Source of the DNA: Pavona decussata
Taxonomy: Eukaryota
Direction: 5' to 3'
DNA length: 64,000 nucleotides
Assembly: GCA_977016875.1 (NCBI GenBank)
Contig: CDRNST010000148.1
Location: 3,348,001 to 3,412,000 of the forward strand
This document shows positions 48,956 through 50,007 of this stretch, one piece after another. The position numbers were made by a program, and so were the translations under genes. Positions within the stretch are counted from its first letter, which is position 1; each line of letters begins with the position of its first letter. The notes beneath the pieces were generated by a model. It saw only the letters and a list, made by a program, of their open reading frames with translations. It made no database searches and was not told the origin of the DNA.

Positions 48956-49663
48956 GACCAGTTTTGTAAGTCGTAAGGTTGTTAAAACGACTGCTATTTT
49001 TTGCTACTTTGACTCTCCAGCAAACTAAAATGAGATGATACGTTTCCAGTGCCGGAACAACGTCACCCGCTCTACAAAGTATAGCTCGTTATTCAATTGG
49101 TCAACCCGAGTCAGTTAGCTTGTCTTCTCGGTTTGTCCAAAATTCGGTGAGTCATTTACTGAAGAAATCAGTTAATTTATAAGTCATCTGCCTATTGTTT
49201 TCAGGTGTGGCCATGACAGGTACTGAGATTGTCTCTTCCGCAACCACAGTCGACGCTATTCCAAGAAGCCACCATGACAAAGACAGTTCAGCGAGGACGC
49301 TTTATCCATAGTGAATTCCTTACAGACGGAAGCTTAAAAACATGCAAAGCAGCCATTCAGTTAGTTAGTCAGTAGATCACCCGATTACTCTGTCATTCAG
49401 TCAGTCAGACAGTCCGTCCGGTAGACAGCAAATCAGACAGGTAGCCACACTGTAGTCATTCTATCCGTCAGGCAGTCAGTCACTTAGTTTTAAGTTTGTT
49501 TTTATTATTCTCTCTGTCATAGCTATTTAATTAAATAAACTCAAGGCTTACTCCCCTTAAAAAGTCTCAGATCAAAATCATTGCAGTGAAACCACGCCTT
49601 ACCGACACTCGTTATTATGTGAATTTAAAATATTATAAAATTGACGTTGTTAAGAGAGTTTAA

Positions 49664-49697
49664 ACAGACGTTTCAGCGATGCTGCCTTCTTCAGGGT
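49664..49697 (-). ncRNA. Second, slightly degenerate minimal hammerhead motif on the opposite strand
   Basis: The minus strand reads acc-CUGAAGA-a-ggca(gcau)cgcu-GAAA-cg-UC-ugu. The core is intact; stems I and II carry mismatches or wobbles. Confidence 0.6.
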
Positions 49698-49731
49698 TAG
49701 GTTAACTATACCGTTAACGGTATAGTTTTGT

Positions 49732-49765
49732 ACCCTGAAGAGGGCAGCATTGCCGAAACGTCGGT
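49732..49765 (+). ncRNA. Minimal type I hammerhead ribozyme motif (Penelope-like-element type)
   Basis: acc-CUGAAGA-g-ggca(gcau)ugcc-GAAA-cg-UC-ggu: stem I acc/ggu, conserved core, 4-bp stem II, palindromic ACGU stem III. Predicted cleavage after C49762. Confidence 0.8.
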
Positions 49766-50007
49766 TTAAACTCTCTTAACAGCGTCTATTTCATAATATT
49801 TTAAATTCACATTTATTAACTACGCTGCGCAGTATTATCTTTATCTTTATTACACTCGTTATTATGGACAGCTTTCTTGGTCCCGCCCCATACATTTTCC
49901 TTAAAATTAACCCGCTTAATAAGGACACTCTGTAATACGGACACTTTTTCTGGTCTCAACGGTGTCCGGGGTGACAACGGGATTTGACCGTATGTTGTTT
50001 TCCGTAG

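Follow-up and report, generated by a model that had tools for sequence, protein, structure and literature searches.

Penelope-like elements (PLEs) leave a recognisable signature at their insertion sites, the hallmarks of which are an inverted 5'-truncated copy, a tail of 30-40 bp at one end, and duplications of variable length (PMC8557442, PMC11167929). The canonical endonuclease-bearing (EN+) PLEs of the Neptune/Nematis type are diagnosed by a DKG motif, by cysteines located between GIY and YIG, and by a CX2-5CxxC linker (PMC8557442). The minimal hammerheads of PLEs possess features that together imply a dimeric helix III (PMC4209133), and the stony coral Acropora millepora has been reported to contain over 6,000 type I hammerhead motifs, most of which are minimal PLE-like variants (PMC7229834). 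In vitro work on an Anolis PLE has placed the start of reverse transcription at two neighbouring internal sites, which delimit the tail (Frangieh et al., PMC11167929), and has shown that the PLE protein cleaves and extends both strands of DNA (PMC11167929).

The locus described here lies in a 64-kb stretch of a stony-coral genome (the window, by which we mean the whole of that stretch), where an earlier note made from the sequence had drawn attention to a foldback with hammerhead motifs between direct repeats. We conclude that the insert is very probably a dead, 5'-truncated insertion of a canonical PLE with a C-terminal GIY-YIG domain and a Neptune/Nematis linker, in which two copies are joined 5' to 5'.

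Anatomy of the insert

The insert occupies 49620-49851, and the earlier description of a 232-bp insertion between perfect direct repeats of 15 bp was accurate, the two repeats (ACACTCGTTATTATG) being 100% identical in a repeat search of the region (Table 1). Comparison of unit copies revealed that the 3' end of the window's PLE family reads ...CTTTATTACAC, and therefore the first 4 bp of the repeat (ACAC) may belong to the element, which would leave a true duplication of 11-15 bp. The repeat search also agreed with the reported inverted arms, 24-bp central palindrome and 39-bp unpaired tail; it paired 49617-49697 with 49732-49812 (81 nt each, 91% complementary), and the arms come to ~97-99 nt when the palindrome is counted in. 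Measured against the subfamily pattern, the right arm has 3 changes private to it and the left arm about 6; with a difference of 9% between the arms as well, the window copy is old and decaying.

Table 1. Features of the insert and its flanks (positions in the window; strand given where one applies).
Feature	Position	Strand	Remarks
Target-site duplication, left copy	49605-49619		first 4 bp (ACAC) ambiguous with the element's own 3' terminus
Inverted 5'-truncated PLE 3' UTR/pLTR copy	49620-49715	-	outer end is the tail-less end point GAATTCAC|AT; inner end TTAACGG
Degraded min-hammerhead copy	49664-49697	-	core letters retained; G-U and A-C in helix II, C-U in helix I
Perfect 24-bp palindrome (12+12), centre of insert	49704-49727		5'-to-5' junction of both copies; central self-complementary TTAA common to both arms
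Direct 5'-truncated PLE 3' UTR/pLTR copy	49716-49812	+	
Min-hammerhead motif, core and helices intact	49732-49765	+	cleavage predicted 3' of C49762
PLE 'tail', 39-bp extension without a partner	49813-49851	+	confined to the 3' end of the direct copy
Target-site duplication, right copy	49852-49866		
Right part of target, copy of another high-copy interspersed repeat	49852-49992		left part to about 49583-49619

The hammerhead motif in the two arms

On the plus strand the right-arm motif consists of ACC (49732-34), CUGAAGA (49735-41), an extra G (49742), GGCA/GCAU/UGCC (49743-54), GAAA (49755-58), CG (49759-60), U (49761), C17 (49762) and GGU (49763-65). For this analysis we wrote a descriptor of the minimal hammerhead ribozyme (min-HHR) from the published features of the class. 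A motif-descriptor search had been suggested in the earlier note, and it found the right-arm motif as the sole match in the 64-kb window, while 300 random 64-kb sequences gave 0 matches. The segment 49732-49765 contains the CUGANGA and GAAA cores, the extra nucleotide after A9, the pair G10.1-C11.1, a palindromic 15.2-16.2 and U16.1-H17. On every sequence criterion the right-arm motif thus belongs to the published min-HHR class, and its catalysis is putative.

The left-arm copy (minus strand, 49697 to 49664) retains CUGAAGA...GAAACGUC and fails the descriptor, with three helix pairs broken: 10.1-11.1 is G-U, 10.4-11.4 is A-C and 2.1-1.1 is C-U. The earlier description of a hammerhead in each arm is corrected to this extent, that the left-arm copy is degraded. 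Since the presence of one motif on each strand stems from the inverted duplication, we count the two as a single occurrence of the motif.

The companion suggestion, an Infernal-type search, returned no hammerhead. The Rfam hammerhead models (types I, II, III, HH9 and HH10) gave no match at E <= 10 in the window region or at six other motif loci, and at the gathering threshold no hammerhead family was detected in the whole window. This outcome is expected because the motifs are without a helix III hairpin.

Family membership

The earlier note had treated the possibility of a single-copy structure as an argument against an independent mobile family. The arm sequence is multi-copy in the 602-Mb genome, with 82 matches scored among 254 candidates, and the copy statistics given here derive from about 90 loci. 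Single-arm copies of about 135 bp end in ...CTTTATTAC(AC), each with its own 13-15-bp duplication (L023, L025, L027), and the foldback copies vary among themselves in centre junction, arm length and duplication. It follows from these differences that the foldbacks are independent insertions and not descendants of one master foldback. The suggested genome-wide search for copies with different target-site duplications was likewise productive, returning copies with duplications of their own of 10-15 bp and with variable centres.

Longer copies extend upstream into an ORF that ends in a GIY-YIG endonuclease domain, the end of the ORF reading ...YIGxTGRRxxDRFREH...PSGLNQDFSFA. At L047, L073 and L075 the unit lies directly downstream of such GIY-YIG ORF ends, and L068 and L070 retain reverse-transcriptase homology further upstream. 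The parent Penelope element (RT plus GIY-YIG) that the earlier note had proposed to look for is represented by an ORF into which the longer copies run, and the first of the two origins proposed there, an extremely truncated inverted Penelope insertion, here with a minimal type I hammerhead whose helix III is palindromic, is borne out both by the continuation of the arm into a PLE GIY-YIG/RT ORF and by its match to the published insertion signature.

In the window's family the longest open frames are 240-279 aa, and no intact full-length copy was present among the ~90 loci sampled. Pfam gave no match to the family's own short GIY-YIG ORFs, and the PLE identity of the family is based on tblastn to the intact ORF of locus L074 together with motif reading. 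L074 represents a related, more distant family with an intact 710-aa ORF (RT plus GIY-YIG), to which the window-family ORF is 41-48% identical over RT and EN in tblastn. The L074 ORF matched Pfam RVT_1 with E = 1.3e-3 and GIY-YIG with E = 8.7e-4, both below the gathering thresholds, and its nearest ESM-Atlas clusters carry RVT_1, GIY-YIG, HTH_animal and DUF8422.

The motifs of the L074 ORF are DKG (KPADKGG), CCHH, two cysteines between GIY and YIG, and a C-x4-C-x2-C linker; DKG was read in this ORF, and the window-family copies that were read stop short of the DKG region. VVYC-x2-C...YIG was read both in the ORF ends of the window's family and in the L074 ORF, and the CX2-5CxxC motif of the RT-EN linker takes the form C-KRII-C-RT-C in L073 and C-RRPR-C-QT-C in L074. 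Judged from the linker motifs alone, the family may provisionally be assigned to the Neptune/Nematis type and not to Penelope/Poseidon.

Two of these loci have arrangements of their own. At L074:2339-5792 (G000:C343) the 710-aa PLE ORF is on the minus strand, and directly beside it, on the plus strand, is an inverted 5'-truncated copy of 382 aa, so that the architecture is that of the window insert at kilobase scale; the hammerhead 3' of the truncated copy has an internal deletion. At L047:1994-2266 (minus strand) a C-terminal ORF fragment of a LINE-type reverse transcriptase abuts the PLE fragment, and this LINE/PLE composite occurs at least 4 times on contig C25, which suggests segmental duplication.

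Inverted arms enclosed by direct duplications are also what a DNA transposon of the foldback or MITE type, bounded by terminal inverted repeats and moved by a transposase, would be expected to leave. We regard that origin as barely credible here: the two ends of the insert are unlike, just one of them having a tail; the duplications range in length from 10 to 15 bp across copies, and the arms have no fixed inner or outer limit; and single-arm copies are common and continue into a retroelement ORF. The one-sided tail, variable duplications and variable arm limits effectively refute a DNA transposon.

Conservation of the hammerhead across PLE lineages

Three PLE families of this genome carry the motif, in each case about 130-200 nt 3' of the ORF stop. 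In family 1, to which the window copy belongs, the core and helix II read CUGAAGA-A-GGCA(GCAU)UGCC-GAAA-CG-UC and helix I is ACC/GGU. Family 2 has the same core with the loop GCAC and a helix I of CACC/GGUG, and family 3 has CUGAUGA-A-GGGC(UCA)GCCC-GAAA-CG-UU with a helix I of GGUACA/UGUACU. The 28-nt hammerhead core has 90 exact occurrences genome-wide, against 0 for the reversed control. When the copies of family 1 were compared column by column over the non-coding stretch, subfamily-diagnostic differences proved to be concentrated at unit positions 111-157 and to avoid 55-110, where the hammerhead and the 20 nt upstream of it lie.

A fourth min-hammerhead variant, CUGACGA-A-GGGC(UAAC)GCUC-GAAA-CG-UC, was a chance find in the flank of another copy (L025:2462-2509, minus strand); no recognisable PLE ORF adjoins it.

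The earlier note had proposed to look for covariation among genomic copies, and compensatory helix changes are indeed present. Among sequences chosen by their core and not by their pairing, which represent only about four independent lineages, 85% of cells in the proposed helices I and II were paired, compared with 20-41% when the partners were slid. Both sides had changed in 6 of the 10 helix pairs, and the observed score was reached in none of 500 shuffles. Three to four PLE lineages of the genome keep the predicted catalytic core with compensatory changes in its helices.

Ends, tail and proposed mechanism of insertion

The 3' ends of 83 distinct unit copies fall into two classes about 40 nt apart, an inner class near GAATTCAC (unit positions about 144-163) and an outer class at ...TTATTACAC (unit positions 185-195). 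In the inverted pairs, of which there are more than 20, the inverted arm invariably stops at the inner site (unit positions 136-163) and never has the tail, whereas the direct arm extends to the outer site in almost every case. Where exact hammerhead cores lie close together elsewhere in the genome, they are consistently head-to-head, minus then plus (7 of 7 pairs). Given that there are two classes of 3' end, and that the longer is one-sided, the 39-bp 'unpaired tail' of the window insert is the known PLE tail (PMC8557442). The PLE insertion signature is thus present in the form of 5' truncation, an adjacent inverted 5'-truncated copy, a one-sided tail and variable duplication.

The 5' ends of the short copies cluster at unit positions 57-67. 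The predicted cut lies between positions 106 and 107, and only 2 of about 45 short copies start near it, at 108-110. That so few 5' ends fall at the predicted cut indicates that the copied RNAs were uncleaved, as in the Anolis system.

These ends are compatible with the following course of events. Only the last ~135 nt of the element, an untranslated stretch just 3' of the ORF stop with the hammerhead included, were copied. By analogy with the Anolis PLE, each strand of a staggered target cut may have primed one cDNA, one of them begun at the outer start site and the other at the inner, the outer-site copy carrying the 39-bp tail and the inverted inner-site copy being tail-less. Both cDNAs would have halted at about the same point, TTAACGG, and their 3' ends may then have annealed through the self-complementary TTAA, giving rise to the perfect central palindrome.

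The clustering of 5' ends, which are not evenly spread, together with the large number of short copies, might instead be taken to mean that the ~135-nt unit is a discrete non-autonomous element, retrozyme-like or SINE-like, with a ribozyme and a transcript of its own, begun some 15 nt 5' of the hammerhead and copied in trans by PLE enzymes. Animal retrozymes have in fact been proposed to be non-autonomous PLE derivatives (bioRxiv 10.64898/2026.07.22.740005). Yet the clustering could equally reflect a reverse-transcriptase stop, and diagnostic haplotypes are common to the ORF-linked and the short copies, so the short copies do not form a separate lineage. Tandem arrays are moreover absent among the loci, one partial tandem at L023 excepted, and the motif is of the minimal PLE type without the canonical loop-loop features of retrozymes (PMC7229834). 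We therefore consider a discrete element of this kind decidedly unlikely. The second origin offered in the earlier note, an independent non-coding mobile unit bearing ribozymes, is unneeded, as haplotypes are shared between ORF-linked and short copies and the junctions vary; a 5'-truncated PLE insertion accounts for the locus.

The inner ends of the arms also hold some details of their own. At the inner end of the window's left arm (49694-49701) the sequence is GGGTTAGG where other copies have GGGTACAA. At L002:1590-1640 (G000:C109, about 239,900), a foldback of the same family has about four telomere-type repeats (CCCTAA) precisely between its two inverted arms. PLEs that lack an endonuclease are known to have telomeric repeats at their ends; the occurrence of such repeats at the inner junction of an endonuclease-bearing family is unexpected.

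Target site and insert-free form

The insertion landed in a further high-copy interspersed repeat, for which there are at least 274 candidates; a copy of it makes up the right flank from 49852 to about 49992 and continues in the left flank. This repeat is composed partly of 16-17-nt sub-repeats of the type CGCTTAATACGGACAC, and its paralogues at L036 and L035 run uninterrupted across the target sequence.

Four sequencing runs were available as contigs, in which the depth over the insert derives from other copies of the family. Of the contigs of run X1, one (depth 16.5, flank 10% diverged) joins 49600 to 49854, without the insert plus 6 further bp, and another (depth 22.6), whose sequence matches the window exactly, spans the left junction of the insert; there are also loose ends at 49852. 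An empty site, for which the earlier note had proposed a check, is thus on record, and the insert-free contig and the uninterrupted paralogues confirm the insertion.

Because the left flank is single-copy in the assembly, the insert-free form, seen in one contig of one run, is most simply the other haplotype. The 9% divergence of the arms, which marks an old insertion, nevertheless fits uneasily with simple ageing when an insert-free contig coexists with it, and the two could be reconciled only by supposing that a divergent haplotype has persisted for long or that the insert was secondarily deleted.

Several features of the surrounding sequence may be recorded here. Runs X1 and X3 contain a second, haplotype-like set of contigs, 4-10% diverged from the window, that covers 49483-49600 and the flanks 49323-49475 and 50042-50200; the insert-free contig of X1 belongs to this set. 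Just upstream of the target repeat, 49344-49490 is a degenerate (GTCA)n-like microsatellite, and 50018-50190 contains clustered short direct and inverted repeats (TCCAGTGGATA / TATCCACCGGA). At 56323-56395 on the plus strand Rfam gave a tRNA match of 31.6 bits, just over the threshold, with several acceptor pairs mismatched; ARAGORN made no tRNA call at 56323.

Does the ribozyme or the hairpin act here?

The RNA of the insert region is predicted to fold into a single long hairpin of -133 kcal/mol (z = -19 relative to shuffles), and in any transcript such a hairpin would bury the ribozyme core. In energy calculations the hammerhead fold of a single unit is 8 kcal/mol less favourable than the MFE, and when forced in the foldback transcript it is about 51 kcal/mol worse than the hairpin; both values agree with the weak, dimer- or protein-dependent activity that has been published. 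The earlier note had suggested that a transcript might act as a hairpin/ribozyme switch or give rise to siRNA. Neither idea is supported, given an energetic cost of this size and a pair of motifs of which one is already degraded, and a ribozyme switch in the foldback transcript in particular is implausible, because the modelled hairpin outcompetes the ribozyme fold.

A hairpin as stable as this could still be viewed as a locus maintained by the host, either as a source of miRNA or siRNA or as such a switch, and there are weak Rfam matches to plant and animal miRNA precursor models. The scores of the miRNA families (MIR6136, mir-1266 and others) are, however, 39.1 against a gathering threshold of 99 bits and 29.2 against 70, and the matches fall on both strands, as they would for any long hairpin. 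The arms have diverged by 9% with changes that are uncompensated, an insert-free allele or paralogue exists, and the ribozyme fold carries the cost given above. Maintenance by the host is on these grounds very improbable. Identity as a miRNA precursor was rejected, since all Rfam scores were far below gathering and represent generic hairpin matches. The element at this locus, as a dead PLE insertion, most likely does nothing.

A more speculative proposal concerns what the motif might do for the family. The head-to-head mini-insertions could each represent the whole of a short transcript whose start lies some 15 nt 5' of the hammerhead. Two RNAs of this kind would pair antiparallel through the palindromic ACGU helix III of the dimeric hammerhead, and a dimeric PLE protein would copy them simultaneously from both strands of a single staggered cut. 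We consider this unlikely. Were it true, the conserved role of the minimal hammerhead would be template pairing, with RNA cleavage secondary, and this would explain why the motif is retained despite cleavage that is weak and, in vitro, dispensable.

Comparison with known systems

For annotation, the practical consequence is that loci of this kind should be masked as PLE fragments and not entered as ribozyme or hairpin-RNA genes. Minimal hammerheads, truncated inverted copies and tails at one end are already well described for PLEs, and the locus changes little in that picture. Where the coral family is of use is in providing clean natural examples that are consistent with the recent in vitro work on PLE integration: start sites ~40 nt apart, inverted arms that end at the inner site and the rarity of starts at the cut together support uncleaved RNA as the template.

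The metazoan non-LTR retrozymes (de la Pena and co-workers 2020, PMC7229834) resemble the insert in being non-coding and hammerhead-bearing, in their large duplications and in their link to PLEs. They differ in consisting of tandem units of 150-450 bp with canonical hammerheads and in forming circular RNAs, whereas the window locus has one inverted pair and a minimal motif (PMC7229834); by the retrozyme criterion of tandem 150-450-bp repeats with a canonical type I hammerhead, there is no tandem array at the locus. With the minimal hammerheads of PLEs (Cervera and de la Pena 2014, PMC4209133) the difference is one of size, helix II being 4 bp in the window motif and 6-8 bp in the Schistosoma and Drosophila motifs.

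The Poseidon PLE of Anolis carolinensis (PMC11167929) shares with the coral family its two adjacent internal RT start sites, which define the tail, the uncleaved RNA template and, probably, the cleavage and extension of both strands, but it belongs to a different clade and host, and its start sites lie inside the next ORF copy (PMC11167929). Relative to the canonical EN+ Neptune/Nematis PLEs (Arkhipova 2006; Craig et al. 2021, PMC8557442), finally, the window locus differs in holding only about 135 nt, twice, and no coding sequence. Every feature of the insert matches published PLE biology, of which it is an ordinary example.
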